A stretch of 64,000 nt of DNA, from positions 34,313,394-34,377,393 of the forward strand of contig NC_081365.1 in the NCBI RefSeq assembly GCF_030684315.1, given 5' to 3'. Origin of the DNA: Stegostoma tigrinum. Its lineage: Eukaryota. The notes under the pieces were generated by a model. That model saw only the letters and a program-made list of their open reading frames with translations, was not told where the DNA came from and searched no databases. Positions 834 to 60,620 of the stretch are shown piece by piece. Positions within the stretch are counted from its first letter, which is position 1. Every line of letters begins with the position of its first letter. A program made the position numbers and the translations under genes.

Positions 834-1043
834 GAGATAACAAAATGTGGAGCTGGATGAACACAGCAGGCCAAGCAGCATCTCAGGAGCACAAAAGCTG
901 ACGTTTCAGGCCTAGACCCTTCATCAGAGGTCTAGGCCCAAAATGTCAGCTTTTGTGCTCCGGAGATGCTGCTTGGCCTGCTGTGTTCATCCAGCTCCAC
1001 ACTTTGTTACCTCGGATTCTCCAGCAACTGCAGTTCCCATTAT
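834..1043. mobile_element. Penelope-derived fold-back mini-element with hammerhead motif
   Basis: Inverted arms matching the 3' terminus of the PLE at 43127-43256; TSD tatcccaaatagtgag at 821-836 and 1041-1056. Confidence 0.85.
898..929 (-). ncRNA. Minimal hammerhead ribozyme motif
   Basis: CU-CUGAUGA-A-GGGUCUAGGCCU-GAAAC-GUC-AG; 2-bp stem I (CU/AG). Confidence 0.65.
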
Positions 1044-1191
1044 CCCAAATAGTGAGTACCATTTGCAGCAAAGGTTAATGATTTGTGACTGACAAGTTAA
1101 CTCACCCAACACAATGTAAAGTGTGAATCTCAGTATGCTTGCATCTTACAGCCTTCAAAAGTGGTGGCAAAAAATATTTTCAATCATTGTT

Positions 1192-1353
1192 AGAGATAAC
1201 AAGGTGTAGAGCTGGATGAACACAGCAGGCTAGAGCAGGAAAGCTGACGTTTTGGGTCTGGACCCTTTTCTGAAGAGGTGCGTGTGTGCTCATCCAGCTC
1301 TACACCTTGTTATCTCAGATTCTCCAGCATCTGCAGTTCCTACTATCTCTGAA
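1192..1353. mobile_element. Penelope-derived fold-back mini-element (internally deleted)
   Basis: Same arm sequence family; TSD ttc(a/g)atcattgtt at 1179-1191 and 1354-1366. Confidence 0.8.
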
Positions 1354-1415
1354 TTCGATCATTGTTGCTGTGTTATCCATTTTATTAGATCTGACCCAAA
1401 TCAGGATGCTATTGT

Positions 1416-1640
1416 AACAAAATGCGGAGCTGGATGAACACAGCAGGCCAAGCTGCATCTTAGGAGCACAAAAGCTGACGTTTCGGGCCTAGACCCTTCA
1501 TCAGATGATTTTTCTGATGAAGGGTCTAGGCCCGAACCGTCAATTTTTGTGCTCCTAAGATGCTGCTTGGCCTGCTGTGTTCATCCAGCCCCACACTTTG
1601 TTATCTCGGATTCTCCAGCATCTGCAGTTCCCATTATCTC
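1416..1640. mobile_element. Penelope-derived fold-back mini-element with two opposed hammerheads
   Basis: About 90-bp inverted arms meeting at tcatcag-atgattttt-ctgatga; perfect TSD tcaggatgctattgt at 1401-1415 and 1639-1653. Confidence 0.9.
1475..1505 (-). ncRNA. Minimal type I hammerhead ribozyme, intact core
   Basis: Minus strand reads CUGAUGA-A-GGGUC-UA-GGCCC-GAAAC-GUC-AG: all core nucleotides present, stem II, palindromic ACGU stem III, GUC cleavage triplet. Confidence 0.75.
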
Positions 1641-1707
1641 AGGATGCTATTGTCCCTGTGATATACAAAGAATAGCCAATTTAAAGAAAATGTAAACCGT
1701 TACTTAC

Positions 1708-1776
1708 TTGATATTGGTCTTCTGTATTTGGTTGGTTTGCAGGAAGATCTCCATGTTTTCCTTTTACTTTGGTCAG
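1708..1776 (-). CDS. CD247: CD247-like exon 3 (juxtamembrane segment to first ITAM tyrosine)
   Basis: ttacattttgttttcaaag|CTG...CAA|gtaagt; 69 nt, phase 0/0, in frame with exon 2. Encodes LTKVKGKHGDLPANQPNTEDQYQ and ends at Y-x like mammalian zeta exon 3 (…QNQLYN). This favours zeta over FCER1G. Confidence 0.85.
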
Positions 1777-2570
1777 CTTTGAAAACAAAATGTAAAGGAG
1801 ACATTGCACAAAGTAAATTTCATTTACTAATCCTGCTATATATCACTAATATCACTCATTAAAATAACCAGCAATATTCTCATGCGACAAACTAATTTGT
1901 TTGTTATGTAATGAGAAATTAGTTCATATGTGGCCAGTAGGGTGTCCTGAAAGCACAAAAGAAAAGATTGACCATTCACAGAATAACCTGCACCCGCAAG
2001 GCTGTGTACAGGGGAAAAATGTAACATAAAATTAGCAAAATCTCCAATGATTTGTTTGTGAGTATAGTAATAGTAAATAAATACCATGTTAAGATATGCA
2101 AGGAAGAAAATGTATATGGAGCAAAACACTAAATATCCTTTTAACTGATACCAGTACTACTTTAGTAGCAGAATTTAATCAGAAATCTGCTAAAATTAAT
2201 ATGCTAATTGTTGTTGACTGATCGTAAACTCCCTGCTGTACAAGCTTACGACCTGTATCAGAAAGGAAACAAGATGTTCCCACAGATGAATAAACAACCA
2301 TCTCACTTTTTTTTAAAGAAAATGTCAGTTTCATCCATGTGGTTTCATTAATTTAATGCTTGGTAAAGAGATGAAGCATTGAAACATCCAAATAAATTGG
2401 TTTCTATGCTGGTAATTGTCACAGATCCCACAGGGCAAAAAGAAATCAGCTCCACTAAATCATGCTGTGATAAAGCAGAAAAACATGTATATATTTAAAA
2501 ATATAATGCTTTATGTGTTTACAGCCACATTCACATTGTTTGAAGTATCTATACAATTAGAGGAGTTGGC

Positions 2571-2600
2571 GGGGGGGGGGGGGGGGGGGGGGTGGGGGGG
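2571..2600 (+). repeat. Poly-G tract (G22-T-G7)
   Basis: Read directly from the sequence; lies in CD247 intron 2. Confidence 0.95.
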
Positions 2601-3559: not shown

Positions 3560-4100
3560 AGCTGCTGTTGAAGCCTTCATTCATGCTAGAATCACCTCCA
3601 GATCACGTCACCCACTTTTCATAAACGTACACTCACCCGCCCATATCCCATTCTGCAGGAATCACATTGACCCATTAATTCTATCCCGCCATGGCCATTA
3701 GACACCAGTTCCCCAATGCCTCAGATTTAAAAGTTTCATTCTCTCATTTAAATCCATTCATGGTCGTACCCATCCCTAACTCTGTAACCTCCTCTGGATT
3801 CTCTATTCTTCTGATCCTGGCCTCAAATGTCCTCAAATAAAACAAAGAACTGCTGATGCTGAAGCTCTGACAGTGCTCAGAAGTTCTCACACCTTCCACC
3901 CCACTTCACCTTAATGTCGGCAGTCTTGTCTTCAGCCAACTTGGTCGTATCTTCTGGGATTCACTCCCTAAATCTCACAAACACTCCCACTCATTCAACT
4001 CAATCCTTAAAACCCTCTGCACTCATGTCACATGTCATCACCTCACTTCATATTTCTTTCTTTGGTGTGACATTCATTTTTATGATTGCGTTATTATTTT
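3560..4100 (+). mobile_element. Old L2-like LINE 3' remnant
   Basis: Degenerate FIHA..TSR / PVPQ.L.FK..IL coding traces typical of the L2 ORF2 C-terminus. Confidence 0.45.
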
Positions 4101-9727: not shown

Positions 9728-11364
9728 AACATAGAACATAGAACAGTACAGCACAGAACAGGCCCTTCAGCCCACATTGTTGTGCCGACCATTGATCCTC
9801 ATGTATGCACCCTCAAATTTCTGTGACCATATGCATGTCCAACAGTCTCTTAAATGTCCCCAATGACCTTGCTTCCACAACTGCTGCTGGCAACGCATTC
9901 CATGCTCTCACAACTCTGTGTAAAGAACCCACCTCTGACATCCCCTCTATACTTTCCTCCAACCAGCTTAAAACTATGACCTCTCGTGTTAGCCATTTCT
10001 GCCCTGGGAAATAGTCTTTGGCTATCAACTCTATCTATGCCTCTCACTATCTTGTACACCTCAATTAAGTCCCCTCTCCTCCTCCTTTTTTCCAGTGAAA
10101 AAAGTCCAAGCTCAGTCAACCTCTCTTCATAGGATAAGCCCTCCAGTCCAGGCAGCATCCTGGTAAACCACCTCTGAACCCTCTCCAAAGCATCCACATC
10201 TTTCCTATAATAGGGCGACCAGAACTGGACGCAGTATTCCAAGTGCAGTCTAACCAAAGTTTTATAGAGCTGCAACAAGATCTCACGACTCTTAAATTCA
10301 ATCCCCCTGTTAATGAAAGCCAAAACACCATATGCTTTCTTAACAACCCTGTCACGTAGGTGGCCATTTTAAGGGATCTATGTATCTGCACACCAAGATC
10401 CCTCTGTTCCTCCACACTGCCAAGAATCCTATCCTTAATCCTGTACTCAACTTTCAAATTCGACCTTCCAAAATGCATCACCTCGCATTTATCCAGGTTG
10501 AACTCCATCTGCCACCTCTCAGCCCATCTCTGCATCCTGTCAATGTCCCCCTGCAGGCTACAACAGCCCTCTATATTGTCAACGACACCTCCAACCTTCG
10601 TATCATCTGCAAACTTGCTGACCCATCCTTCAATCCCCTCATCCAAGTCATTAATAAAAATTACAAACAGTAGAGGCCCAAGGACAGAGCCCTGTGGAAC
10701 CCCACTCACCACTGACTTCCAGGCAGAATATTTTCCTTCTACTACCACTCGCTGTCTTCTGTTGGCCAGCCAATTCTGTATCCAAGCAGCTAAGTTCCCC
10801 TGTATCCCATTCCTCCTGACCTTCTGAATGAGCCTACCATGGGGAACCTTATCAAATGCCTTGCTGAAGTCCATATACACCACATCCACAGCTCGACCCT
10901 CATCAACTTTTCTAGTCACATTCTCAAAGAACTCGATAAGGTTTGTGAGGCATGACCTGCCCCCCTCACAGCCGTGTTGACTGCATTTAATCAAGCCATG
11001 CTCTTCCAGATGGTCATAAATCCTATCCCTCAGAATCCTTTCTAACACCTTGCAGACAACAGACGTGAGACTTACTGGTCTGTAATTACCAGGGATTTCC
11101 CTATTTCCTTTCTTGAAGAGAGGAATTGCATTTGCCTCTCTCCAGTCCTCAGGTAGGACTCCAGTGGAGAGCGAGGATGCAAAGATCTTCGCAAGTGGCA
11201 AAGCAATTGCATTTCTCGTTTCCCAAAGCAGCCGAGGACAAATCTGGTCCGAGCCTGGCGACTTGTCAATCTTAATGTTTGACAAAATTTTCAGCACATC
11301 AGCTTCCTCTATCTCTATCCATTCCAGCATGCACACCTGCTCTTCAAAGGTTTCATTCACTACA
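9728..11364 (-). mobile_element. Young 5'-truncated CR1 LINE (RT domain, frameshifted), nested in an older CR1 fragment
   Basis: ORFs 10116-11390 and 9850-10323 carry NYRPVSLTS, DFSKAFDKVPH, GVPQGSVLGP, KFADDTK and TRGHSFKL; (CTATGTT)2 3' tail. Confidence 0.95.
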
Positions 11365-12502
11365 CTACTACTTCTGTCATTTTTCCACAAAGCTTTAGTT
11401 CTTCATCTCTGGGAAAATTCTAATAAATCTCCTCTGCATCTTTCCAAAGGCCTTAGCATTCTTCACTAAGTGTAGTGCCTAGAATTGGATACTATTCTAT
11501 CTGAGGACAATAAAACACAGAAACTAGGTACAGGAGTAGGCTGTGTGGCCCTTCAAGCCTAGTCTACTATGTGATCACTGATTGTTCTTCCATTTCAATG
11601 CCATGTTCCCTCTTTCTAAATTTTGATGCCTTTAGAATAAAAAAAACAAATCTTTCCCAAATATATTTAGTGTTTTGCCTTTGCAGTTTTCTACGATAGC
11701 GAATTCCATACCTTTTGAGTGAATAATTCTTTCCTCATCTTAACCCTAAATGGTCTACCCATATCCTGAGAAGATGTACCCAAATTGTAGACTCCCTAAA
11801 CAAGGAAATCATCTTCACCACATCTAGGCTGTCCAGTCCTCTCACCCTTCCAAACTCCAGTGAATACAGGCCCAGTCAAACCAAGTTTTCCTCATAGGAC
11901 AGTAATGATATCCCTGATATATGTTTAGTGAACTTCTGCTGCAGTCCTTCGATGGCAAGCACATCCTGCCAAGTTTCTACCCTCTGCTCCCCTTTTTCTC
12001 CAGTCCACCTACATCCTTCTGAAATCTGCTTACTGCAATTTTTAGCTCTGTGTCATCCGAAGGTTTGATCAAATTATGTCCAGCTTGCCCAGCTGGACAG
12101 GTTAACCCATGTGGAAAAGGGTGACAGTCCCAACACCAACCCATGAAGACTATGACAGTACCCCTTCAGTCTGAAAAGTATCCTTTATTCACTACTGTCT
12201 GTTTTGTGATGTTTGAACAAGTTTTCTCTCACACTGCTTTTGCTACTTTGATTACATGGATGATAATGTTTCTAACAAATTTATAATGCGGGTATCAAAG
12301 TTTATGAAAGACCGATATACAACAGAGTGCACTTTCCTCACCAGACCTTTACATTACTTCATCATAGGGCTCAATCTTGCTTGTCAAAAACAATTTACCC
12401 CTTCAAAAGATCCATGTCAGCTGTCATTTATAAAATCATGACTTTTTAAGTAATAATGAATTTTATTCCATACTACTTTTGTGATAGTTTCTCCGCAATT
12501 GA

Positions 12503-14599: not shown

Positions 14600-17140
14600 T
14601 TACAGAAGCTCAGAAGGAATTGCAGTGCAGGAGGATGCAGCACACTGTGCCTGCACCAGTTCTATTACCCAGTGCCAATCCCTTGCCTTTTCCCCGTATC
14701 CTTGTATGTCATTTCCATCCCAGTAATCGTCCAATGCTCTTCTGAATGTCTCAACTGAACCTATCTCCATTACTTCCAGACAGTGCATTCTACACCCTAA
14801 CTATACACTGTGCAAAAAAGTTTTTTCTCATCACCCTTGCTTCATTCACATATCACCTTCAATGTATGCCCTCTAATTTTTTTTTGTGAGGTTGTCGACT
14901 TACTTGTTGAACTGGTTTGTTTTTGTTCAGACGTTTCACCACCATGCGAGGTTACATCATCAGTGAGGCCTCCGATGAAGCGATGTTATTCTACTCCACT
15001 TGGAATTTATACTGTCCGGCCTGTAATGGTGAGTTGTGTCATTTCCAGTTTTGATCTGTGTGCGTTTGTATGTAGGGCCCAATTCTACATGTTTGTTGAT
15101 TGCATTACCGGTGGAGAACAATGCCTCAAGGAAGTCCTGTACGTGTCTATGTTTGGCTTCGGCTACGATAGTTACGTTGTCCCAGTTAAACTGATGGTCC
15201 TTAACTGAACAATGCGACTATAATAGCCCAAGCCAAACACGCACAGGAATTCCTAGAGGTATGGTTCTCCACACATAATGCGATCAACAAACATACAGAA
15301 TTGGACCCTATATACAAACCCAAACAGAACAAAACCGAAATGACAGTACTCACCATAACGGACCGGACAATATAAATTCCAAGTGGAGTAGAACAACATT
15401 GCTTCATCGCAGACTCCACTGATAATGTTACCCATGGTGACGAAACATCTGAACGAAACAAGCCGGCTCAGTGAGCAAGTCAACAACCTCACCCACAACC
15501 GAAGCTACAAATCTTTGCTAAAACTTTAAATTCTTTTATCAGTGATGACCAGGGACACCTATCCACCCTATACAGACTCCTTATGATTTGTAAAGTCTCT
15601 ATCAAATCTCCCTTCAGCCTTCTTCCTTCTGAACAGAACAGTCCCAACTTCTTCAATTCACCTTCATAACTGAAGTTTTCTATTCCTGCAACCATATTTG
15701 GAAATCACTTCCTCACTCTTTCTAACATATTCACATCTTACCCATATTGTGGACCCCACAACTGCACACAACACTCAAGCTGATGTCTAACAAGTGTCTT
15801 CTACAAATTCAACATCACATCCCTGCTCTTGTACTCTATGTCACTATTAATAAAACTGCCGTCTCTGTATGCTTTATGCACTGCTGTCTCCACCTATCCT
15901 GCTACCTTCAGTGTTCTGTGCAAATATTTACCCAGGTTCCTCTGCTCCTATTTCATATTGTTTTTCAATGTTCTTCTTACCGAAGTGCATCACCTCAGAC
16001 TTCTCCTCATTGAACCTCAGCTGCCAGCTCTCCACTTACTCCACCAACTTATGGAGTTATGGAATTATACAGGATGGAGACAGACCCTTCAGTGCAACTC
16101 ATCCATGACAACGAGATATCGTCAACTGATCTAGTCCCATTTGCCAGCATTTGGCCCATATCCCTCGAAACCCTTCCTATTCATATACCCATCCAGATGG
16201 CTTTTAAATTTTGTAATTGTACAGGACTCCACCACTTCCTCTGGCAGCTCAATGCATACACACACCACCCTCTGCATGAAAAAGTTGTCCCTCAGATCCC
16301 CTTTAAATCACTTTAAACCTATGTTTAACAACATTGTTCCTATAGTAGGGAGACCAGAACTAATTACAGTATTCCAAAACTGACCTCAGCAATGTCCTGT
16401 ATAGCTGCAACTTGATGTCCCAATTCCTATACTCAATGCACTGACCAATGAAGGCAAATGTCGTCTTCACTACCTTATCTACCTGCGCCCCTACTTTCAA
16501 GGAACTATACAACTGCATCCCTAGGTCTCTTTGTTCGGCAACCCTCTTCCCAGAGCCTTACCATTAACTGTATAAATCCTGCCCTGATTTGCCTTACCAA
16601 AATGCAACACATCACATTTATATAAATTAAACTCCATCTGCCGCCCCTCAGCCTGTTTGATCAAGGTTCCATTGTGCTCTTTAATGTCATTTGGAGCACC
16701 ACACCGTCCTCCTCACAGTTTACAATTTTTTTTAAGGTTTTGTGTCATCTACAAACTTTGAAATTGTCCCTTACAAACAAATGTCCAAATTATTGCTATA
16801 TATCAGGAGAAGCAAGGGTCCCACTAGTGACACCTGGAAAATTCGACTCCAATCTTCCTCCAGCCCAGAAGATATCCATTGACCAATACTCTCTGTGTCC
16901 TATCATTCAGCCAATTTTGTATCCAAGTTGCAACTGTCCCTTTTATTCTGTGACCGGCCACTATCCTCATATGCCTGTTGTTTGGCAGTGTACCAAATGC
17001 CTTTTGGAAATTCATGTTTAAAGCATTAACAAAGTTACCTTCATCAACGTTTTCTGTTACTTCTTTGAAAAACTCCAGAAAGTTCAAACATGATTTTCCC
17101 TTTAGACATCCACGCTGACTATTCCGAATCAACTCATCTT
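14600..17140 (-). mobile_element. Cluster of old nested CR1 fragments
   Basis: ORF traces LGLF..E.RRLKGDLIE, GKSCL.FLEFF.EVT, WIQNWL.DR.QRV; interrupted by the Penelope at 14885. Confidence 0.75.
14885..15515. mobile_element. Penelope (Poseidon-like) inverted 3'-end pair inserted in a CR1 relic
   Basis: About 320-bp inverted arms. The + arm encodes a GIY-YIG C-terminal trace IIAQAKHAQEFLEVWFS..AINKHTELDPIY. Hammerhead motifs at about 14928-14964 (-) and 15419-15451 (+). Confidence 0.8.
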
Positions 17141-17515: not shown

Positions 17516-17659
17516 AACTTCCCAGTTCTGAGGAAGGGTCCCCAGACCCGAAACATTAACTCTGCTTTTTCCTTCACAGGCGCTGCCAGACCTGCTGAGC
17601 TTTTCCAGCAACTTTGTTTTTGTTTCTGATTTACAGCATCCACAGTTCTTTTGGTTTTT
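17516..17659 (+). mobile_element. Penelope 3'-terminal monomer (CUGAGGA family)
   Basis: CTGAGGA-A-GGGTC-CCCA-GACCC-GAAAC-ATT at 17528; perfect TSD atttattttcttctc at 17501-17515 and 17660-17674; same terminus as the PLE at 55352. Confidence 0.8.
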
Positions 17660-23650: not shown

Positions 23651-23689
23651 ATTTAGTCATTTTAAAGGTTGCTGAATCTGTTAGTATCT

Positions 23690-24504: not shown

Positions 24505-24590
24505 ATTCTGAGGAAGGGTCACCAGACCCTAAATGTTAACTCTGATTTTTCTTCACAGATGCTGCCAGTCCTGCTGAGCTTTGTTGTTTA
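24505..24590 (+). mobile_element. Penelope 3'-terminal fragment (CUGAGGA family); a similar copy lies at 25687-25820
   Basis: ctgaggaagggtcaccagaccc.aaatgttaactctg…gatgctgccag. Confidence 0.65.
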
Positions 24591-43126: not shown

Positions 43127-44530
43127 GAGATAATGGGAACTGCAGATGCTGGAGAATTCCAAGATAATAAAATGTGAGGCTGGATGAACACAGCAGGCCA
43201 AGCAGCATCTCAGGAGCACAAAAGCTGACGTTTTGGGCCGAGACCCTTCATCAGAGAGGGGGATGGGGAGAGGGAACTGGAATAAATAGGGAGAGAGGGG
43301 AGGCGGACCGAAGATGGAGAGTAAAGAAGATAGGTGGAGAGAGTATAGGTGGGGAGGTAGGGAGGGGATAGGTCAGTCCAGGGAAGACAGACAGGTCAAG
43401 GAGGTGGGATGAGGTTAGTAGGTAGATGGGGGTGCGGCTTGGGGTGGGAGGAAGGGATGGGTGAGAGGAAGAACCGGTTAGGGAGGCAGAGACAGGTTGG
43501 ACTGGTTTTGGGATGCAGTGGGTGGGGGGGAAGAGCTGGGCTGGTTGTGTGGTGCAGTGGGGGGAGGGGACGAACTGGGCTGGTTTAGGGATGCAGTAGG
43601 GGAAGGGGAGATTTTGAAACTGGTGAAGTCCACATTGATACTATTAGGCTGCAGGGTTCCCAGGCGGAATATGAGTTGCTGTTCCTGCAACCTTCGGGTG
43701 GCATCATTGTGGCAGTGCAGGAGGCCCATGATGGACATGTCATCTAGAGAATGGGAGGGGGAGTGGAAATGGTTTGCGACTGGGAGGTGCAGTTGTTTGT
43801 TGCGAACTGAGCGGAGGTGTTCTGCAAAGCGGTCTCCAAGCCTCCGCTTGGTTTCCCCAATGTAGAGGAAGCCACACCGGGTACAGTGGATGCAGTGTAC
43901 CACATTGGCAGATGTGCAGGTGAACCTCTGCTTAATGTGGAATGTCATCTTGGGGCCTGGGATAGGGGTGAGGGAGGAGGTGTGGGGGCAAGTGTAGCAT
44001 TTCCTGCGGTTGCAGGGGAAGGTGCCGGGTGTGGTGGGGTTGGAGGGCAGTGTGGAGCTAACAAGGGAGTCACGGAGAGAGTGGTCTCTGTGGAAGGCAG
44101 ACAGGGGTGGGGATGGAAAAATGTCTTGGGTGGTGGGGTCGGATTGTAAATGGCGAAAGTGTCGGAGGATGATGCGTTGTATCCGGAGGTTGGTAGGGTG
44201 GTGTGTGAGAACGAGGGGGATCCTCTTAGGGCGGTTGTGGGGCGGGGGGGGGGCGGGGTGTGAGGGATGTGTTGCGGGAAATGCGGGAGACGCGGTCAAG
44301 GGCGTTCTCGATCACTGTGGGGGGAAAGTTGCGGTCCTTGAAGAACATGGACATCTGGGATGTGCGGGAGTGGAATGTCTTATCGTGGGAGCAGATGCGG
44401 CGGAGGCGGAGGAATTGGGAATAGGGGATGGAATTTTTGCAGGAGGGTGGGTGGGAGGAGGTGTATTCTAGGTAGCTGTCGGAGTCGGTGGGCTTGAAAT
44501 GGACATCAGTTACAAGCTGGTTGCCTGAGA
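43127..44530 (-). mobile_element. Penelope-like retroelement (Neptune-type), 5'-truncated: RT thumb plus GIY-YIG endonuclease
   Basis: TDVHFKPTDSDSYLEYTSSHP..CKNSIPYSQFLRLRRICS; CNRRKCYTC linker; NVVHCIHCTRCGFLYIGETKRRLGDRFAEH. Hammerhead at about 43226-43256; TSD caggtctctttaca at 43113-43126 and 44540-44553. Confidence 0.95.
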
Positions 44531-45754
44531 TCTTTACAACAGGTCTCTTTACAACAGTCTTTTTCTGCTGATGATCATTTTGCTTCTCATTAGAAGCCAA
44601 TCCAGAGCATCCAATCCAGGACATGACCTATTCTCATCTTGAATTTGAATAACTCCAAAGGGAACAAATTAACTTCTTAACACAAATGCCTTCTGCAGGG
44701 GAAGATGTGAAAGTGGCTATGAACACTGAGTATTGATGTCCATGTGTCAGACGTTATCGAGTCTAATACACTGTCTCCCATTTCTCACCTTTGTTTTAAC
44801 TCAGGCTCAGAAAATCCTGAAAATGTGTGCATGTCTTGCACAATCTTGTGACAATCTTTTTTCAAATCTCCCCCTTTAAATATTCAAAGCAATGGCCTGC
44901 CTGTTGTGAGAGAGCCAAGCACACACATATTGAAATACAAATGAATGGAGCCATTTTCTGAATGAGTTGCCATTTTCACGTATCATAACTTTCCTCATGA
45001 ATCTAAAACCTCATTTCCACAATATTAGAGTCCCCTAATCAGTGTTCATGAAGCACTGAACAGATTGTGCCAAATAATGTTTCAGCTCATTTGAACAATC
45101 ACCTATAAATATTGCTGTTGCTATTCCCTGACTATACAGTAGACCCAAGATCAAGCTTTGGTCAGCAAGTCCGAACTAAATTACTTGATGGTGCCTGCAT
45201 TTTCAGACACATATATTTCTCTGATCTTATCTTGATTTCCTTTAATTGCAAAGTTTGATATTCAAGCTCTGCATTTGTGGTTCAGTAGATTTTGTGAAAA
45301 GATTATTCATTTCGGTAAAATCCCTATAATAATTTAAATCTGTAAATTGGGGATAATGTCAAATTTGGGCAGTAGTGTAAAATAGACAATATTGAATCAG
45401 TAGTCCATCATTTAGCCAAACTCCTCTGGGCCTGGAGGTCGGAAGGGAACATAATTTGGTGGGACAGTGGAGGACCAGAGCCCTGCCACGTTTCCACCTT
45501 TGTCAGGGTGAGCCATTTGAAGGTGGGTGCCTCAGTCTGCAGTAATCTGTGCACCTTCAAGGGACTTGCCAAAGTGCAGCATGGAGGCTGCTCACAGCCT
45601 GTCCTGGTTCCCCTGTCTCCATGACTGCCACCACAAACAACATTTCAATTTTCTCTTGATGGCTCTCCATCTTGGGGAGTCTGATAGATTGTCATACTGA
45701 CAGCAGGCACAGCTTCCCCTGTGGTGCTGCTGGCTGTCCGGTGGGTTATAGGAT

Positions 45755-47330
45755 AATGTAACCCACTATTTATAAAAGGAGGTAAAGAGGGAAGAAGGAA
45801 TTACAGACTGGTTAGCCTGGCATCGGTTATGGGGAAAATATCAGAATCCAATATCTGCAATACAAAATCCAATATATGCAATAGCTGATCACAAGGACAA
45901 TGATCAGACAGAGTCAGCTTGGATTCACAAAGGGATGTCATGCTTGACAAATCTGCTGGAATGTTCTGAAAATCTGACTGGTAGTGTTAATAAGGGGGAG
46001 ACAGTGGATGTGGTTTACTCGAACTTATCAAAAGATCCCACCTAAGAAATTATTATGCAAAATTAAAGTGCATGGGATTGGGGGAATAGAGTACTGATGT
46101 GGATAGAGAACTGATTCACAGACAGAAAAGAGTAGGATTAAATGGGTCATCTTCCAAATGATATCCAGTGACTACTGGGATAACCCAGGGACCTGTGTGT
46201 GGATCTTAGCTATTCATAACATATATTAACAATTCAGATGAGGAAGCAGAGTGTAATATTTCTAAGTTTGCTCATGACACAAAGCTGGGTAAGATGGTGA
46301 TCTGTGAGGAGGATGCAAAGATACTTCAGTGTGATTCGGATAGTTTGAGTGAGTGGACAAATGCATGGCAGATGAAGTTTAATGGACATAAATGTGAGGG
46401 TATCCTCTCTGGTAGAAAAAAAACAGGAAGGCAGGTTACTACCTGATTGGCAATTGACTGGGAAAAGAAGAAGTCCAATGAGATAGCCATACACCAGTTG
46501 CTCAAAGTAAGCATGCAGGTGCAGAAGGCAGTGAAGAAGGCAAATAGTATGTTTGGCTTCACAGCGAGAAGATTCAAGTACAGGAGCAGGGATTAAAACT
46601 GAAAAAAAAACTGTGGGTGCTGAAAATCAGAAACAAAAACAGAAATTGCTGGAAATGCACGGCAAGTCTGGCAGCATCTGTGATGGAGATCCAAGTTAAT
46701 GTTTCAGGTCAAATGACCCTTCCTCAGAACAGGATCAGGGATGTCTTGTTGTAATTGTACAGAGCCTTAGTGAGATCACATGAGGATGTGTGCAGTTTAT
46801 CTGAGGGAAGACGTTCTGGCTATGGAGATAATACAACAAAGTTCACCAGACTGATTTCCTGGGATTATAGGACTGACATATGAAGGCAGATTGGGTTGGT
46901 TAGGACTATACTCCCTAGGGTTCAGAAGAATGAGGAGTGATCTCATAGAAACCTCTAAAATTCTAACAGGGCATGACATGGTTAACAAAGGAAGGATGTT
47001 CCCAATTACTGGGGAGATCGGGAACAAGAGTCACAACCTAATAATACAGGGTTGGCCTGTAGGGCTGAGCTGAGGAGAAATTCCCTCATTCAGAGAGAGA
47101 ATGGTGGCCCTGTGAAATTCTCTACCCCAGAAAGTGGTTGACACCAAAGGATTAAGTGTTTTCAAGAAGGAGTTAAATATCGTTCCTTGTGCTAGAGGAA
47201 TCAAAGGGTATGCAAGAAAACAGGTACAGGGTACTAAGCTGGATGATCAGCGAGGGTCATATTGAATGGTGGAGGCTGAAAGCACTGAATGGGGTACTCC
47301 TATTCTTATTTTCTGTTTCTATATTTCTGT
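45755..47330 (+). mobile_element. Degenerate CR1 RT region plus 3' end
   Basis: NYRLVSL, SCLTNLLE, SKFAHDTK and RRMRSDLIETSKIL traces; interrupted at 46594. Confidence 0.8.
46594..46728 (-). mobile_element. Penelope 3'-terminal monomer nested in CR1
   Basis: Ends at gttCTGAGGAAGGGTC; TSD acagga(g/t)cagggat at 46580-46593 and 46729-46742. Confidence 0.8.
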
Positions 47331-47655: not shown

Positions 47656-49869
47656 CACAGATTGGGCAGGAGAAGCAGCTTGGATATCAAAGGAGTAAGA
47701 CATTGAGGATTACCACCATCTCAGTAACAATGTCTATGATAGTAACATAACCTGCATCTGGTGCTAAAGTGCAATAAGCTACACTTTATTTAAAACAACA
47801 GCCTCTTCTTGTGACACTACCTTCTGGTTATCCTTGACCACACTAGACAAAGCAGGGTCTGTAGATCCCTACCAAGAAAGAGGTTAGTGGCAGCAAATCT
47901 ACCAGCCGGATCCCACACGGTGGTGTGCTGGTGTGAATTCATGTTACAACACCAGCCTCTGAATTTATTGGAAGCACTTGGCAATCAGGTCACACTCATC
48001 CTGGTCTAATATGAGTGGAGAACTCAGCAGAGCCCAATCAGCTGCTTGACCGCTAGAAGATCCAATGGGCCTCTATATCATGACAAGGCATCGGTGTCTC
48101 TTCTTCGATCTCTTCTGAACTTGGATTTAGTCCAAAAATGAAAAGATACTACCCAATATCTTTGCCGATGTTTCCTTCCTTTGGCATCAGTATTGCACTA
48201 GTCCAAAATTACTTTCATTGGCTTTTCATATTGCTCTTCTCAAGGCCAATTAGGGATAGGCAAGAAATGCCAACGTTGCCAACAACACACACCTTACATG
48301 CATAACTAACCAAACAAAGACAGCCATGACCACGAAGTCGGACTTTAACCTTGAAAAAACATTCTAAATCTGATGATCTCTTTAAGCTGCAGATGCCCAA
48401 TTTAAGTGTAGCCTGTTAACAATAAGCATGCAATAAATCCAGCATTCAAACACTCAATTCTCAAAGATCTCAGTTTTTCTACGTATTATCTACACACTTT
48501 CAAATTCTTCTTTATATCAATCACTTCAACCATGCTTTTGGCTATCCCCCCTGTCATCTTCTTGTGTCTGGTCATTTTTATCTTTTTGCCTTCAAAGCAA
48601 AAGGCATGCAAATCATTTTTGTTGTGTGAACAGAAAATATTCGTCATGTAATATACTCTGGTAAATTCGCATTAGTCATTTTATTTGAAATAGGATCATT
48701 TGAAACAATTTCTCATAGCAAATTGATTGTGAAAAAATTAAATTAAAATTGCTTACATATAATTGTTTACATGCTTAGTTAAGAATACATGTATAAACAT
48801 ATTTAATGTAGGTTTAGGATATAATTATCACAATACTTAATGCAAATTTGAAATATATAGTTTTCCTAAAATTCAACACGTTAGTTTTATATCCTTATTT
48901 GTAATGTGGTTAACAGCATAGTATACATTTGTTCAGACTTAGGACTACGGAAACAAAATTTCTGTTCCGAATTTGAGTCAAAAGACTGGCACGAATTGTA
49001 GGTGAAATATATGTAAGATGTTAATCATGAAGGTTATTTTGTTATCAGGGAGAAACTGTCTTTTAAAAATTATATTGTGCTGCTAAAACACACAGTGGTT
49101 TATGCATTTTAGTGACATCAGAGAGTTTGGATACAAAGTGTAGAAATAAAAAGTAAATATTGGAAATATAACGATTTCATTACACTTAAGTTTCCGCCGC
49201 AAAATATCACAAATAATGAGCAGATTTTCTTTATATAACAAAAACTCTTAAGCTGTACTTTGTATGCTTCTGCATATTGTTACTTCAAAAGGTTACGAAC
49301 AAATGTTTGCAATTAATTCCCTTTAGAGCTATTTTATAGCTGCTGATTTTTGATACAATTTGCAAATACTGTGCAAAAACATCACAAACTTGAACAATCG
49401 CAAGAGACAAATTTAGAAAAAGATGATGTTTAAGTTTAGTTTTGGCTTCTGAAATCCTCTAATTTCAGATTGAATAAAGGAATGTAGAATAAGGAAATTC
49501 AGAGAAATAAATAATTTATTTGTAAAATAAATCGTAACATACTTGATCGGATAGCATTAAAGCAAAACTTAGTTAGTTAATATTGTCATTCTGAATCTGC
49601 TTTTTTATTCCTGAGTTACTCCGTAAATATATATATCATATATATGACTATATATAAATATCGCTAGAAAATAAATTGATAATGTTACTTTATTACAAAT
49701 ATATTCAGTGCTTGTATAAGATTGAAATATTATGACTTTTAGAACTAGTTCACATTATCTACTTGCATTGTTTCTAATGCTTCCTGTTACAAACATGTTT
49801 ATAGACAAACAATTCATCATTAACTATCTTATCTAGTATTTCGATACCTGACTAACCGGTCTACTAGAA

Positions 49870-50103
49870 ACACACAAAAATGGATATTGCTGGAGGAACT
49901 CAGAAGTTCTGGCAGCATCTGTGGACAGAAAACGCAATTAGGTTTTTGAGTCCAGTAACTCTTCTCCAGATGAATCTGAAGAGGATTCATTAGAATTAAA
50001 ATGTTAACTCTGTTTTCTCTCCACTGATACTGCCAGACCTGCTAGGTTTCTTCATCAATGTCTGTTCTTGTGATTTTCAGATCTCCAGTATCTGCGGTTG
50101 TTT
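49870..50103. mobile_element. Old Penelope fold-back mini-element
   Basis: Diverged inverted arms meeting at ctccaga-tgaa-tctgaaga; similar old copies at about 39222-39385 and 62325-62490. Confidence 0.65.
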
Positions 50104-50580
50104 CTGTGATCAATCTGGCTATCTGGCTGCTTTATGATCAAATTAACTGACATTACTGGTCATTTAGTGCCTTACATTTGTTGCAAGTAGCTTTTTCTCA
50201 GTTAAAAACTAATGCAATGTGAATGTGACATTGCAGCATTGTTGGAAATATCAAAGGTTAAATCAATGCTTCAAGCATTAAAGGTAAAAAGCAGGTCTGT
50301 GAAATTGTGGAGATTCGGCTTTCTCCAGATGAACCAATTACTCTTTTCGTATTTCAGATCGTGATTGATTTTCAGTATTTCCTCAAAATTTCTGTTAGTT
50401 TAAAGCTTTAAAGCATAGTTGTATTGGTCCTATGCTGTCATGTTTTGTTATTTAATCAACTTGTAATTGTTCTGATAGGTATAAATAGATTGTAAAACAA
50501 ACACAATATTTCAAACATCATTGCTCTGTCTTCAATCATGTACATAGAATACAGGTAATACCTGCGTAAGTGCTTTTAAA

Positions 50581-50797
50581 GGGATAACGGGAACTGCAGA
50601 TGCTGGAGAATCCAAGATAACAAAGTGTGGAGCTGGATGAACACTGCAGGCCAAGCAGCATCTTAGGAGCACAAAAGCTGACGTTTCGGGCCTATACACT
50701 TTCTTCTGATGAATGGTCTTGGCCCAAAACGTCAGCTTTTGTGCTCCTAAGATGCTGCTTGGCCTGCTGTGTTCATCCAGCTCCACACTTTATTATC
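50581..50797. mobile_element. Penelope fold-back mini-element
   Basis: Inverted arms; TSD taagtgcttt(t)aaa at 50567-50580 and 50798-50810. Confidence 0.85.
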
Positions 50798-51964
50798 TAA
50801 GTGCTTTAAATCCTGGTTATGGCAATGTTGTAAGAGCAAAAAGTCAAATAAGCTATAACAACAACATGCATCTGGTTCAAAAATTGTGACTGAACATTGA
50901 ATTCAAAGTAATTCATCAGGATGGTTTAAAATTTGTGGGCACATTGTGTTAACCATTATGGAAACTGACAACAATTTTGCACCACAATCCAAAACATAAC
51001 CAGCACAAAGTATGCCATAGTTTAAGAATACTATAACTTAATAGCATTTTTGTTTTGGCACATCATAACTTCTGAAATGTGGTGTAACATAGATACTGGC
51101 AGAAAATTATGTCTGCAGGTGGTGTGTGAAAGCAAGGAATTGTGGTTGTAACAGCGAGTCTTCTAATACTCAACATAAGGCAAATCAAAAGTTGCTTCAT
51201 TGATATGTTTGCTTTCACTTGTTATATTTTATGCAACCACAGATTTTGAATAATTATTAATCACTTCTTTTGTTTTTGGTTTTCTAAAGACTATACTGTA
51301 ATCAAAATTTCTCTGTGTTATAGTAAATTAAAATTAGACTGACTGATATCTTTTGGGTTCAGACTGTTTAGCTATCTATTGCTTCCAATGCTTCCACAAT
51401 TGTACAAGCAGGAAAATCTGTTTAATCCTATATATTGAACAACATCTGTTCATAAAGTAGCTTCTTGCATTGTGATTCAGTTATTCAGTTTATTTCCTCC
51501 TCTGTAATTTCTAGAAAGAAAAGTTTTCTGAAATGTTTTGTAAGTTTCTGGAGGTCTACTTATATACAATGGTTTACATTTCATTTTATTATGATGCATC
51601 AGAGACCAGTGAGACCCTGTAAGTTCATTTATTTGGGTTACATGACTAAAATTAATACACAACTTAAACCAGTACTTCCAATATTCAACTCATAAAAGGT
51701 AACAACTTACATTCATTGCAAAAAAAAAGCCTTTAAGATATCCTGTAGGATTCACAACTTTTGGAAAAAAAAATTTCTAAACTTTAGAACTGCAGCATGA
51801 AATGAATTACTGCACTTCTATCAAAGAAGCATTTTTGCAACAAGTACTTTTCCATCAAATAAAACTTTTTAAAAAACACATTTAACACCTATGTGTGTGC
51901 CTTTGAAGAGTAATTAAATGCTCTACTAAGTGTTAAATCCTATTGCAATGTTTTAATAAATACA

Positions 51965-54732: not shown

Positions 54733-54764
54733 ATTTGCATTGTTATTTCACACTTCATTTGCAT
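54733..54764 (-). promoter_or_regulatory. Paired octamer motifs (ATGCAAAT x2)
   Basis: atttgcat at 54733-54740 and 54757-54764 in non-repeat DNA. Confidence 0.35.
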
Positions 54765-55351: not shown

Positions 55352-56145
55352 TGGAAAAACCATAAGAACTGTGGATGCTGTAAATCAGGAACAAAAACAA
55401 AGTTGTTGGAAAAACTCAGCAGGTCTGGCAGCATCTGTGAAGGAGAAAACAGAGTCAACATTTCGGGTTCTGAGGAAGGGTCATGGAAGAGGGATTGTTC
55501 CACATAACGTACAAAGAGGCAGGCATAGCTTGGGCCCATGTGGGTATCCACGGCCAACCCCTTTGTCTGTAGGAAATGGGAGGAATTGAAAGGGAAGTTG
55601 TTGAGGGTGAGGACGAATTCAGCGAGGTGGATGAGGGTGTCAGTGGAGGGGGACTAGTCAGGCCTGTGGGACAGGAAGAAGCAGAGGTCCTTTAGGCCAT
55701 CTGCATGGGGAATGCAGGTGTATGGGGACTGGATGTCCATGGTGAAAATGAGATGTTGTGGATTGTGGAATTGGAAGTTCTGGAGGAGGTGGAGGGCGTG
55801 GGTGGTGTCACGGATGTAGGTAGGGACTTCCCGGGGAGAAAATGAAATCAGGATAGGTGGAGATAAGTTCAGTGGGGCAGGAGCAGGCAGAGACAATGCG
55901 TCGACCAGGGAAGTCAGGTTTGTGGATTTTGGGAAGGAGATAGAAGTGGCTGGTGTGTGGTTGGGGAACGATGAGGCTGGAGACTGTGGGTGGGAGGTCA
56001 CCTGAAGTAATGAGGTTGTGGATGGTTTGGGAGATGATGGTTTGGTGGTCGGGGGGGTGGGGTCATGATCAAGGGGGTGGTGGGAGGAGGTGTTGGAGAG
56101 TTGGCGCCTGGCCTCAGCATGTAGAGGTCAGTGCGCCATACTACA
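55352..56145 (-). mobile_element. Penelope (Neptune-type) RT fragment fused to its 3' terminus
   Basis: TYIRDTTHALHLLQNFQF…IFTMDIQS.YTCIPHADGL and HMGPSYACLFV.YVEQSLF, joined directly to the hammerhead-bearing end. Confidence 0.85.
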
Positions 56146-56470
56146 CACAATTTTTCTCATTCTCCACATTCTGAAGAATAACCATGGCCCTTGGCAATAT
56201 TCAAACTCTCATAAATATATATTTATAGATCATTAGAAATGGTAAATGGAACATGTGGACATTTCCTGGGTAGCAAAGAATTTAGCATGTGATTTCTTGG
56301 AACTCAAAAGCCACAAGAGAACTGGAGATTGTCTGCTGTTTACAAATGTCAATCAGTTTTCTGGAGAGCACAAGCCAAAATTTTTGAGAGAGAGATAGAA
56401 GTCGGAATTTATTACATTAGTTGTTCAGCAAACAGACTTTGAAAACACCCTAAGGAGATGTGCTGTTTGT

Positions 56471-57270
56471 CGATGTTGGTGTATTCACTGAGCTGGGAGG
56501 TTTGATAGCAGATGTTTTATCCCCTTACTAGGTGATATCATCAATGCTGTGGAGCCTCCATTGAAACACCATTTCCTTGTGCTGGTTTGAATTTACATGG
56601 TCTGGTTTTTGCTGCTTTCAGTAGGTGCCCATTCCAGTTGTGCGTTGTAATGGTCGGTATATCGGGTCGAATTCAATGTGCTTGTTGATGGAGTCTGTGG
56701 ATGAATGCCAAGCCTCCAAGAATTCCCCAGCTGTCCTCTGTTTGGCTTATCCAATGTTAGTAGTGTTGTCCCAGCTGAAAGAGTAGTTTTTCTCATCTGT
56801 GTGTGTTGAAACTAAGGACATCGTTTAGTTGCTAGCTGGTGTTTGTGGATTTGGGTTGCTAGTTGTCTGCCTAATTGTCCCACATAGTGTTTTGTGCAGT
56901 CTCCACATTGTATCTTGTCAACTACATTTGTCCTGTCCACAGTATCTGTTGGGTCTTTAACCCTGGTCAGTTGCTATCTCAGTGTGGCTGCCTGTTTGTG
57001 TGCTGTCATGATTTCTAGTGGTCTGAGTAGTCTGGCAGTCAGTTCTGAGGTGTTTTTAAAAATGGTTTGGTGGCTATTGTTTCAGGTTTAAATTCAATAG
57101 AAATATAAATTCAAACCAGCACAAGACAACAATGCTTCACAGGAGACTGCGCAGCACTGAGGATGTCACCTAGTAGGGGTAGGAAACGTCTGCTATCAAA
57201 GCTCCCAGCTCAGCGAACACGCCAACATCTACAAACAGCATCCGAGCTACAATCTTCACTCAAACCCTGA
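56471..57270 (-). mobile_element. Penelope (Poseidon-like) GIY-YIG fragment with inverted terminal copy
   Basis: Minus-strand trace NVV.KIQCGDC.KHYVGQ.GR.LAT.I..H…EFLEAWHS..SINKHIEFDPIY; inverted arm at about 57105-57270; TSD agatg(t/a)gctgtttgt at 56456-56470 and 57271-57285. Confidence 0.85.
57153..57194 (+). ncRNA. Minimal hammerhead motif (Poseidon-like family)
   Basis: AGCA-CUGAGGA-U-GUCACC-UAGUA-GGGGUAG-GAAAC-GUC-UGCU; 4-bp stem I, decayed stem II. Confidence 0.55.
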
Positions 57271-57879: not shown

Positions 57880-58430
57880 CCACTCCTGGAAATATTGTGT
57901 AGATTTCTGATCACCACACAACTAGAAGGATCTGAATGCTTTGAAGAGGGAGGAGAAAATGTTGACCAGGATGTTGCCTGGTATGGGCGATTTTAGCTAT
58001 GAAGAAAGATTGAATCGACTGGTTTTGTTTTCACTGGAATGCAGGAAGTTGAGGGGCAACCTGCTAGAAGTTTGTAAGGTTGTAAATGGCCTGGACAGAG
58101 TGGAAAGTATGAGGCTTTTTCCCAGGGAGGAGAAGTCCATTACTAAGGGACACAGGTTCAAAGTGCAAGGAGGGAAGTTTAAAAGAGATGTGCAAGGCAC
58201 GTTTTTCACACAAAGAGTGGTGAGTCACCTAGGAATGCACTGCCAGAGGAGGTGGTGGAAGCAGACATAATAGTAGCATTCAAGAAACACTGGATAAATA
58301 CTTGAATAGGAAGGAATAGAGCAATACGAACCTTGTAAGTGAAGACAGTTTTAGTTTGGAAGGGCAAAATGTGTCAATCCAGGCTTGGAGGTCCAAAGGG
58401 GCCACGTTTCTGTGCTGTATTGTTATTTTG
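57880..58430 (+). mobile_element. CR1 3' fragment
   Basis: TRMLPGM..FSYEERL.RL.LFSLE.RKLRG…TKGHRFKV. Confidence 0.85.
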
Positions 58431-58596
58431 TTCTTTGTACCTCTAATCAGGGTCACGATACAACTCAATTAAACAATAAAAGAAGTAAAAAGAAGTAAAA
58501 AATCACTTCAAACCCAGAAGTCCTTGGTGCTAAAAATTGCTTTAATCTTAGAATTACCTTCTGATTTATGGTGAAAATGAACAATGAGAAAAAGGG

Positions 58597-58760
58597 GTAA
58601 TAGGAACTGCAGATGCTGGAGAATCCAAGATAACAAGTTGTGGAGCTGGATGAACAAAGCAGGCCCTTCATCAAGGGTCTAGGCCCAAAACATCAGCTTT
58701 TGTGCTCCTAAGATGCTGCTTGGCCTGTTGTGTTCATCCAGCTCCACACCTTGTTATCTA
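58597..58760. mobile_element. Penelope fold-back mini-element
   Basis: Inverted arms; TSD aatgaga(a/g)aaaggg at 58583-58596 and 58762-58775. Confidence 0.8.
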
Positions 58761-59625
58761 TAATGAGAGAAAGGGACTGCCCATTCAAGGCACAGCCATT
58801 ACAAGTCTACTGTAATCATTCAAAGATCATAATTAATTCCGTTAAATTTTTGCAAACATCTTTTGCGGTTCCATAACTGAGAGTGAATGGTTAAGGAAAT
58901 GTCAATTAGTCCTCAGCTTTTCAATTTATTTCTGCCATTAAACCCACAATCATCCCAGACCCAGAATGACCTGGGCAATAGTGAGTCAGTTGAGAAAGCA
59001 TGGCAAGGTCAGAAAAATGAGATTCTCAATGTCAAGAAAATACTCTGATTTTGACAAGGAGATGAGATGAGAATCTCGTCATTGAGCAGCAAGAGGCCTA
59101 TTTCCATGAATTTACATTTCAATAGTGCCTGATCTTGGCTTATTATTAATGTAATTTCCATTCTCTCACAGCACAGAGAAACCAGATGGTAATATTTGCT
59201 GACATTGTAGTCAGAGTGGGTTCCTGGTTGTTCTAATCTGCCTCTTTCTCCTTCGGCCCTCCATTTTAGATAGCAGTCTCTAACATATCAGAATGCTCTC
59301 CCCAGGCAGCAACAGTTTGTGCTCCCATTGTATAAAGATTGATGTTGCATATGCACCAGCCTCACCACAGCAACAGGGGACATCTCTGATTCATTTAGAA
59401 TACAATTGTCTACTTCAGTACTCCTCTTTGGCATGCACCAACAACTTGTCATCCTCCTTGAGCAACCCACACGGTGTTGACTCTGGTGTACCCATGTCAC
59501 AGCTAGCGATTGTCCAGATCAATCCCAGCTTTACATGCATCTTGCAATACTTCTGACTCCCCAAACATTAATACTAGACTATGGAACACTGATTTGAACT
59601 GATTCAACCCCCGCTAATCCAGACT

Positions 59626-59830
59626 CAGAGATAGCAAGAACTGCCGATGCTGGAGTCAGAGACAACACAGTGTGGAGCTGGAGGAACACAGCAGGCCAGG
59701 CAGCATCAGAGGAGCAGGAAAGTTGACAGAAAATTTTCTGAAGAAGGGTCCTGACCCACAACGTCAACTTTCCTGTTCCTCTGATTCTGCCTGGCCTGCG
59801 GTGTTCCTCCAGCTCCACACTGTGTTGTTT
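59626..59830. mobile_element. Penelope fold-back mini-element (CUGAAGA family)
   Basis: Inverted arms; TSD ctaatccag(g)act at 59614-59625 and 59831-59843. Confidence 0.8.
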
Positions 59831-60139
59831 CTAATCCAGGACTATTTTCATAAACAAATTCCTCTGAAGCAAATTGTCATCAGGTAAATGCTCATGGCCA
59901 AGGTCGCTGCTCAGATAGGGGGATAATGGTTAGGTGGGTGGGTCCATAACTTGTTGAGTTGGTGATTTTGGGGCAAACAATGGTTTACAATTACATTTTT
60001 TTGTGTCACATTTTTCCAAAACATTTGGGAACCATAAGATCCTGGCATGGTAATCCAAATTGCAATGTTTTAATTGGAATAATATATTTAAAGCCTCATT
60101 TCCATTTGTCAAAATCAATTTAGTAGCTTTTGCCAAGTT

Positions 60140-60620
60140 CTTTTTCTTGGCGAGAAGAAGGCTAAGAGAAGATTTGATAGGTGTTTTCAAAATCATGAGA
60201 GGGTTGGTTACAGTAGATAAGGAGAAGGTGCTTATTTTGGTAAAAGGAACAAGAATGAGAGGCCTAGATAACAAAGTGTGAAGCTGGATGAACACAGTAG
60301 GCCAAGCAGCATCTCAGGAGCACAAAAGCTGATGTTTCGGGTCCAGACCCTTCATCAGAGAGAGTGTTGATTTATAGTGATGCACAAAAGAAGCGAGGGC
60401 GATGAGAGAAAAATGTTTTCCCTCAGAGGATAGTTAAGGCATGGGATGCACTGCCTGGGTGTGTGGTGGAGGCAGGTTCAATTGAAGCATTCAAGAGGGA
60501 GTTGGATGATTATTTGGATAGAAATAATCTGCAACTGTATAGAGAAATAGCAGGGAATTGGCATTAGGCAATGATCGTCATTTGAGGAGCCAACACAGGC
60601 ATAATGGACTGAATGGTCTC
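60140..60620 (+). mobile_element. CR1 3' fragment with nested Penelope monomer (60266-60362, minus strand)
   Basis: RRRLREDLIGVFKIMRGL trace; the insert carries CUGAUGA-A-GGGUC-UG-GACCC-GAAAC-AUC. Confidence 0.75.

Follow-up and report, generated by a model that had tools for sequence, protein, structure and literature searches.

Decayed minimal hammerhead motifs in 5′-truncated Penelope-like element insertions of a zebra shark genomic window

Introduction

A 64,000-nucleotide stretch of the zebra shark (Stegostoma tigrinum) genome (contig NC_081365.1, positions 34,313,394 to 34,377,393 of the forward strand; hereafter the window, numbered from its first letter) is dotted with a repeat that looks like a short interspersed element (SINE). 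A preliminary description read this repeat as the end of a Penelope-like element (PLE) and found in it a window-wide network of minimal hammerhead ribozymes. The locus thus raises the question of what these motifs are, how they came to be spread as they are, and whether any of them could still act as a ribozyme. We put at roughly nine in ten the reading in which the motifs are minimal type-I hammerheads near the 3′ end, or pseudo-long terminal repeat (pseudo-LTR), of PLE units and the copies are decayed, two-ended, 5′-truncated insertions. The window holds about 17 such dead-on-arrival insertions, belonging to four to five zebra shark PLE families.

Hammerheads of this kind were described by Cervera and de la Peña in 2014, who report them from the repeats that flank every PLE examined, with copies numbering in the thousands in coelacanth and Xenopus (PMC4209133). 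The features listed there are a base between A9 and G10.1, a G10.1-C11.1 pair, a palindromic 15.2-16.2 pair, and consensus families related by compensatory changes; dual motifs lie on opposite strands 100–700 bp apart, solo motifs come from truncated PLEs, and dimeric action and weak in vitro cleavage are reported. PLE insertions in general are recognized by being truncated at the 5′ end, with an upstream copy in inverted orientation and a tail on one end (PMC8557442). For Poseidon PAc, an element of the lizard Anolis carolinensis, the protein cuts and extends both DNA strands, and reverse transcription starts at two adjacent internal sites, the interval between them forming an optional tail of 30–40 bp (PMC11167929).

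Results

Hammerhead motifs of a few families exceed chance expectation

We define the motif as CUGANGA, one extra base, stem II, GAAAC, and GUC or GUU. A covariance model built from 17 window copies and run unfiltered identifies 22 hammerhead-derived motifs (E < 0.1) within 893-60364. The plain core pattern (CUGANGA, 8–30 nt, GAAAN) has 17 matches in the window, about 10 of them with a paired stem II. A structured descriptor (CUGANGA, 0–1 extra base, a stem of at least 4 bp, GAAA) matches seven times, compared with 0.15 ± 0.38 in 200 dinucleotide shuffles (maximum 2). This excess arises because a few transposon families have been copied, and does not reflect 22 independent origins. Exactly one extra base is present in all seven descriptor matches and in every aligned copy.

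The earlier estimate of about four families is a fair one: we distinguish family A with a subfamily D, family B, and families C1 and C2. Family A has the box CUGAUGA, an extra A and a stem II of GGGU/RCCC, with C3, the first base of the box, at 927, 1504, 1515, 43254, 50707, 58667 and 60358. Its close relative D has the box CUGAAGA (C3 at 1274, 20843, 21325 and 59739). Family B reads CUGAGGA-A-GGGUC-NNNN-GACCC-GAAAC-GUU-AAC (C3 at 17528, 24507, 25691 and 46727, plus foldbacks at 49970 and 55470), and its tail can be aligned to that of family A at about 65–75% identity. C1 (C3 at 14963 and 15421) and C2 (56545 and 57157) share an extra U and a 6-bp stem GUYACC/GGUGAC, and their tails give no alignment with the A or B tails.

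A direct sequence check of every cited site bears out the preliminary description. Stem II is GGGUC-CCCA-GACCC at 17528(+), GGGUC-UG-GACCC at 60331-60358(−) and GUUACC-CAU-GGUGAC at 15421(+); at 57157(+) the GUCACC arm is present and its partner is decayed. The unpaired base after A9 is A in families A, B and D, U in family C, and C in one decayed copy. The palindromic stem III is likewise found once obvious CpG changes are undone, GAAAC-GUC giving ACGU and the GAAAC-GUU-AAC of family B giving AACGUU. Every family, in its inferred sequence, has both core boxes, C3-U4-G5-A6-N7-G8-A9 and G12-A13-A14.

Weak matches to the model also occur at 31739-31805, a short palindrome with no convincing copy. 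Here CUUCUUCAGAAAAUUGAUAAAAUUUUGAAGAAG at 31745-31800(−) resembles the centre of a family D foldback that is nearly armless, and may be a remnant or a chance match (model E about 0.5–0.8).

The repeat matches the 3′ terminus of a Penelope-like element with a GIY-YIG domain

The SINE-looking repeat does prove to be the 3′ end of a PLE with a GIY-YIG endonuclease: family A repeats are 89–94% identical to the last ~110–130 nt of an element at 43147-44650(−). This 5′-truncated family A copy comprises the region following the reverse transcriptase (44229-44627), an endonuclease open reading frame (ORF; 43481-44311, minus), a 3′ untranslated region of ~220 nt separating the ORF from the hammerhead motif, and a tail of ~110 nt. 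The motif itself (43227-43254, minus; 51 bits) has a G12-to-A change, a CpG transition.

The ORF carries FLYIGETKRRLGDRF, and in this truncated copy its GIY-YIG match scores 14.9 bits, under the Pfam cut-off. It has 110 relatives, the closest being a whale shark protein (P0001) that is 88% identical and matches GIY-YIG at 23.2 bits, over the cut-off, and RVT_1 at 22.7 bits. A reverse transcriptase is thus joined to a GIY-YIG domain at the C terminus in a single ORF in P0001, and also in relatives of the family C peptide. Directly before the GIY-YIG domain, family A has a CX4CX2C motif (C-NRRK-C-YT-C). A zinc-finger-like motif in this linker marks the Neptune and Nematis clades (Arkhipova 2006, as cited in PMC8557442), and this one motif suggests that family A may be of Neptune/Nematis type.

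An independent set was obtained by scanning metagenome contigs with an alignment of the endonuclease relatives, which gave 80 loci. The model built on the shark copies finds a motif on the same strand in 40 of the 49 loci with enough downstream DNA, at a modal position 101 nt past the end of the endonuclease protein match. An inverted upstream motif is present in 13 loci (for example L038, 2603-2643 minus and 3608-3648 plus). Motifs in this set, for example CU-CUGACGA-A-GGGC-UAAC-GCUC-GAAAC-GUC-AGCUUU, have the extra A and the post-cleavage AGCUUU of shark family A; other types have a helix I of CCA/UGG with GUA, or of CUCA/UGAG. One metagenome locus (L032) has a motif with an extra U and no long ORF upstream.

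Pairing is maintained across families

The motifs correspond in core boxes, helices and position at the PLE 3′ end to minimal type-I hammerheads of the published PLE kind, and stem II varies between families with its pairing kept, as had been proposed. A covariation check set beforehand supports this. Across the 17 window copies, helices I and II and a two-pair helix III have 80% of their cells paired, against 17–42% in slid controls in which the 3′ partner was shifted by 1–3 columns, and none of 500 shuffles reached the observed covariation score. Joint alignment with the metagenome relatives raises the paired fraction to 85% (17–36% in slid controls) and contains 37 double-sided changes, compared with 13.3 ± 2.9 in shuffles.

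Helix II is 89% paired, with G-C at 10.1-11.1 in 15 of 17 sequences and four to five pair types at positions 10.2 and 10.4. Pair 15.1-16.1 is A-U in all 17 sequences and 15.2-16.2 is C-G in 13. The two proximal pairs of helix I are well kept and covary (U-A/A-U; C-G/U-A); pairs 3 and 4 form in family B, family C2 and the metagenome types, and not in family A.

Most copies are foldbacks or inverted pairs

The SINE-looking units are foldbacks, each made of two inverted, 5′-truncated tails. Eight short foldbacks are present in the window, and inverted pairs occur in all families. Each short foldback is a single insertion event with its own target duplication; duplications of 9–16 bp delimit six insertions. 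Measured from C3, all six short A/D foldbacks have one arm that stops at +89 to +98 and a partner that stops at +125 to +133, and arms of the metagenome relatives end at +86–91, +100–107 and +119–120. The copies thus show the PLE insertion signature of 5′ truncation, an inverted partner, and a 30–40 nt tail on one arm only. An A/T-rich consensus in the flanks of genomic copies (taken from loose contig ends) is consistent with a preference for AT-rich targets.

Three family A or D-like foldbacks lie close together. In the first (I1, 835-1044) the minus arm (835-929) has a near-intact motif (900-927, C11.1 to U) and the plus arm (929-1044) begins at +9 and has the long tail; its 16-bp target duplication, TATCCCAAATAGTGAG, is at 821-836 and 1041-1056. 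The second (I2, 1193-1352, D-like, 9-bp duplication) has an internally deleted plus arm, and the motif on its minus arm (1239-1278) lacks the CUGAAGA box, which was lost at the junction. The third (I3, 1415-1640, family A, 15-bp duplication) contains two complete motifs head to head and 7 nt apart: the sole motif with an intact core, CUGAUGA-A-GGGUCUAGGCCC-GAAAC-GUC at 1477-1504(−), and a plus-arm motif at 1515-1542 with A14 changed to C. That three foldbacks fall within 800 bp (834-1640), separated by A/T-rich DNA, may reflect a local hot spot or insertion beside earlier copies.

Further family A and D-like foldbacks lie to the right. At 50575-50798 (I7, family A, 10-bp duplication) the plus arm has a whole motif (50707-50734; G10.1 to U, G12 to A) and the minus arm runs from +8 and has the long tail. 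The junction of the family A foldback at 58593-58759 (I8) is inside the hammerhead. In the D-like foldback at 59626-59835 (I9, 9-bp duplication) the plus arm has a whole motif (59739-59766, decayed at G12 and A13) and the minus arm starts from +25. A single family A copy at 60263-60369(−) has its motif at 60331-60358, with G16.2 changed to A.

Family B is represented by solo copies and by two foldbacks. The copy at 17516-17659(+), flanked by a 15-bp target duplication, has the motif CUGAGGA-A-GGGUC-CCCA-GACCC-GAAAC-AUU (17528-17557, G16.2 to A). The motif of 24503-24582(+) is at 24507-24536 (G12 to U, C15.2 to U), that of 25687-25842(+) is heavily decayed, and that of 46604-46733(−), at 46698-46727, has two CpG transitions. 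An old foldback at 49867-50103 has arms that are 71% complementary and a junction at the hammerhead; in the other (55355-55486) the junction is inside stem II, between a long minus arm and a plus stub of 17 nt.

The longer inverted pairs belong to families D, C1 and C2. The D pair (20752-21457) has arms of ~335 nt, extending into the last part of the endonuclease ORF, and both of its motifs (20816-20843 minus, 21325-21352 plus) are decayed (GAAAU-GCC). The C1 pair (14886-15492) has arms of ~300 nt and motifs at 14930-14963(−) and 15421-15448(+), with the extra U and a stem II of GUUACC/GGUGAC. The C2 pair (56461-57240) has arms of 138 nt with 504 nt between them and motifs at ~56512-56545(−) and 57157-57190(+).

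Taken with the published biochemistry, this architecture points to a mechanism in which a PLE ribonucleoprotein cuts both strands of an AT-rich target and reverse transcription is primed from both DNA ends, at either of two internal sites ~90 and ~125–130 nt downstream of C3. The product is often two inverted 5′-truncated copies with a target duplication of 9–16 bp and a tail of 30–40 nt on one arm.

Some copies may, as the preliminary description proposes, be transcribed within host pre-mRNAs. A search of sequencing runs gave no RNA run that covers the stretch, and the window has no host coding exon as judged from a search for the immunoreceptor tyrosine-based activation motif (ITAM) pattern and from the ORF listing. 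The right-hand duplication of I1, TATCCCAAATAGTGAG, is followed by TACC leading into GTGAGT, a splice-donor-like hexamer; no coding exon adjoins this hexamer, and 763-833 has stops in all three plus-strand frames. Two copies of a long interspersed element at 9850-11390(−) and 29548-31254(−) have nearly identical reverse transcriptase ORFs of 424 and 568 residues.

The inserted motifs are decaying neutrally

As a statement about active ribozymes, the network and ribozyme load of the preliminary description are overstated, the core being intact in one motif of 22 (1477-1504, minus). Every other motif is either altered at one or more essential positions or missing a part, and short copies retain only 0–6 nt of the 5′ strand of helix I. 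The intact motif is itself predicted to be masked. RNA of its foldback would form a hairpin of 91 bp (−181.3 kcal/mol, z = −23.7), in which the foldback partner is modelled as sequestering the hammerhead. Folded alone, the motif has a lowest-energy structure that pairs CUGAUG with CGUCAG, and its 5′ flank supplies a single helix I pair. By these models this copy is unlikely to fold as a ribozyme. With one intact core among 22 motifs, and that one in a hairpin, the window is therefore better said to carry a load of hammerhead-derived sequence.

How large that load is genome-wide can be gauged crudely. Summed contig depth in same-species DNA, from a contig set that has no differences from the window in unique DNA, is 2–7 million over the repeat and about 20–50 over unique flanks, a ratio of ~10^5, and a related species (about 6% divergent) has the same depth pattern over the repeat. 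Summed contig depth is not copy number, and we read it only as very many copies, perhaps of order 10^5. By this crude measure the claim of a very large genomic load is supported for the repeat; for active ribozymes it goes too far.

Damage had been attributed mostly to CpG decay, and this is partly right. One or other of the two CpGs in the core (C11.1-G12 and C15.2-G16.2) has undergone a CpG transition in 14 of 17 aligned motifs, although CpG transitions make up less than half of substitutions (about 4 of 10 in family A). The excess conservation expected of the core over its flanks is not seen in family A, where six arms have 10 changes in 168 motif sites and 17 in 390 tail sites. Pairwise identities of decayed A and B copies agree, the motif being not clearly more conserved than the tail. 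The family A motif changes at a tail-like rate, and the inserted copies are therefore decaying neutrally.

The 5′ ends of short copies cluster at the hammerhead

In all six short A/D foldbacks, one arm or both begin 0–6 nt upstream of C3, and the four solo family B copies lose similarity 2–6 nt upstream of it. The junctions of all eight short foldbacks fall within the motif or no more than 6 nt ahead of it; those of the longer D, C1 and C2 pairs are 54–335 nt upstream. Of 11 inverted copies at the metagenome loci, 3 stop at −7 to −13. An initiator-like CCA(U/G)UU directly precedes C3 in families D and B. The published cut site would put 5′ ends at +28. Since the short copies retain the motif upstream of the tail, their templates were not cut at C17. 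The simplest reading of the pile-up would be a discrete RNA 5′ end just before the motif, at either a start or a processing site.

The family C motif contains stop and start codons

The minus arm of the C1 pair (14963-15217) is open over its whole length, 85 codons, ending at U4-G5-A6/U7-G8-A9, the UGA-UGA of the box; the other two frames have 9 and 7 codons. In a full HMMER search the 85-codon peptide has 62 relatives (best 2e-22), among which RVT_1 matches reach 43.7 bits and GIY-YIG matches 24.6 bits. The long relatives have RVT_1, and in them the stretch that matches the peptide directly follows the first half of GIY-YIG, which identifies the peptide as the C-terminal half of a PLE endonuclease. 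The peptide alone has no Pfam match, no BLAST match to family A and no word-search match, and a profile comparison is not significant.

In C2, the frame beginning at A9-U-G10.1 is open for 35 codons through the tail (57163-57267, plus) and starts MSPSRGRKRLL. This resembles MSPRMVTKRLQ of another relative (P0154), there located 14 residues past the endonuclease half; reading the P0154 peptide back by eye gives a hammerhead with the extra U, GUCACC, GGUGAC, GAAAC and GUC. As read from these frames, the extra U of family C would also be the middle base of an AUG, and if units were arrayed in tandem the stop and start codons would overlap within the core of the ribozyme. For PAc, a start codon where stem II begins has been published (PMC11167929); a limited literature search found no mention of ORF stop codons inside a CUGAUGA box.

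Discussion

The copies in this window are best read as decayed insertions of elements whose active RNA would have a hammerhead core that lacks its own helix III, with a helix I of 2–4 bp, a helix II of 4–6 bp and, after A9, one base left unpaired. For helix III to form, two motifs would have to pair through the ACGU or AACGUU palindrome, or protein would have to help, and cleavage would be expected after GUC, GUU or GUA.

Several observations weigh against this picture. The Rfam hammerhead models have no match in the whole window at the gathering score and none in 800-1700 at E ≤ 10, which is expected of motifs without their own helix III and without loop contacts. Helix I is short, with good support for two proximal pairs only. 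Published cleavage of minimal PLE motifs is weak or protein-dependent (PMC11167929, PMC4209133), RNA-seq of the anole element has no ends at the cut site (PMC11167929), and PLE clades without hammerheads proliferate well (PMC8557442), so the role of the motif in active elements may not be self-cleavage. Finally, genomic copies with the motif upstream of the tail came from a template that was uncut or religated.

Two related alternatives are less likely. One, to which we give a low but not negligible probability, is that the 5′ edge of the hammerhead marks a discrete 5′ end of the most frequently copied RNA, and that the hammerhead and the next 90–130 nt form a self-contained, SINE-like minimal template in which the motif serves mainly as a 5′-terminal module, providing start-site context or a handle for ribonucleoprotein or dimer formation, and is not a cutter. 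The other, somewhat less likely still, is that the conserved box is kept for non-catalytic reasons and the hammerhead-like fold is incidental or vestigial. Family C fits such a reading, its box supplying the ORF stops and A9-U-G10.1 onward reading as the N-terminus of the next ORF (MSPRMVTKRL is shared with P0154), as does the pile-up of short-copy 5′ ends at the motif's 5′ edge. In the anole element, moreover, the region just past the motif is needed as template and hammerhead mutants still insert, the ribozyme being protein-assisted and dispensable for insertion in vitro (PMC11167929). Yet in families A, B and D and their metagenome relatives the motif is non-coding 3′ sequence with an extra A, and core bases and covarying stems are kept all the same. 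Coding cannot explain the compensatory changes in helix I, which span the cleavage site, and the anole motif does cleave with protein, its C3 and G8 mutants behaving as in true hammerheads (PMC11167929).

Two other explanations concern what the repeats are. Non-LTR retrozymes are hammerhead repeats in tandem from which circular RNAs are made. They originate from PLE pseudo-LTRs and are present in a cartilaginous fish (bioRxiv 10.64898/2026.07.22.740005), and their unit size and motif type are similar. We nevertheless consider them improbable here: the window has inverted pairs and solo copies only and no head-to-tail arrays, each event has inverted arms and one target duplication with arm ends at the two reverse transcription start sites, and family A arms match the end of an ORF-bearing PLE at the 89–94% identity given above. 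That the matches are due to chance, or belong to hairpin or microRNA-like genes, deserves almost no credence. Sub-threshold Rfam microRNA matches do overlie the foldbacks at 1415-1640 and 835-1044, because these are long hairpins; the matches reach only 30–39 bits against gathering scores of 69–230 and track the inverted repeat. Chance is countered by the sevenfold recurrence of the strict descriptor where 0.15 is expected, by motifs that occupy a fixed transposon position and are conserved in distant hosts, and by the covariation in the joint alignment. The same two foldbacks could be miscalled as microRNA precursors, or could feed small-RNA pathways if transcribed.

PLE hammerheads in decayed insertions, the reading we prefer, are a known class already described in 2014, although the families in this host have probably not yet been catalogued. 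The shark motifs have in common with metazoan PLE hammerheads (PMC4209133) the CUGANGA and GAAA boxes, the extra base, G10.1-C11.1, the lack of loop III with a palindromic 15.2-16.2, a short helix I and the pseudo-LTR location; there as here, a genome has several compensating families, and most copies are solo or on opposite strands. Nothing essential differs, this shark host and these families being unnamed in that work. In detail, stem II is 4–6 bp in the shark and 7–8 bp as reported for Schistosoma. Helix I is published as 4–5 bp (PMC4209133); the shark keeps two proximal pairs well, and further ones form in families B and C2. The extra base following A9 is not peculiar to this genome, being listed among the hallmarks of metazoan PLE hammerheads (PMC4209133). 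An extra A at this point, compatible with catalysis, is also attributed to the hammerhead of chrysanthemum chlorotic mottle viroid (De la Peña and Flores 2001, as cited in PMC4209133), which differs in being of type III with full helices and of unrelated origin.

PAc (PMC11167929) has its start codon at the start of stem II, which in family C would be A9-U-G10.1. The cut site about 25–28 nt past the start codon, the reverse transcription start sites about 30–40 nt apart that define the tail, the cutting and extension of both DNA strands, and the AT-rich target also have counterparts in the shark. Unlike PAc, family C has an upstream ORF that ends in the UGA-UGA of the box without a spacer, an arrangement not mentioned in PMC11167929, and in families A, B and D the extra base is A and the motif lies in 3′ sequence that is non-coding.

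For annotation, motifs of this kind escape Rfam and are very numerous in shark genomes, and they should be masked as PLE tails and not entered as ribozyme genes; PLE foldbacks also mimic microRNA hairpins. The role of the hammerhead in PLEs is still open in the literature (PMC8557442, PMC11167929). The overall picture presented here stays known biology, within which the pile-up of 5′ ends and the stop/start overlap of family C are small leads on that role, and the shark copies preserve natural insertion products in large numbers, with arm ends that correspond to the two in vitro reverse transcription start sites of the lizard element.

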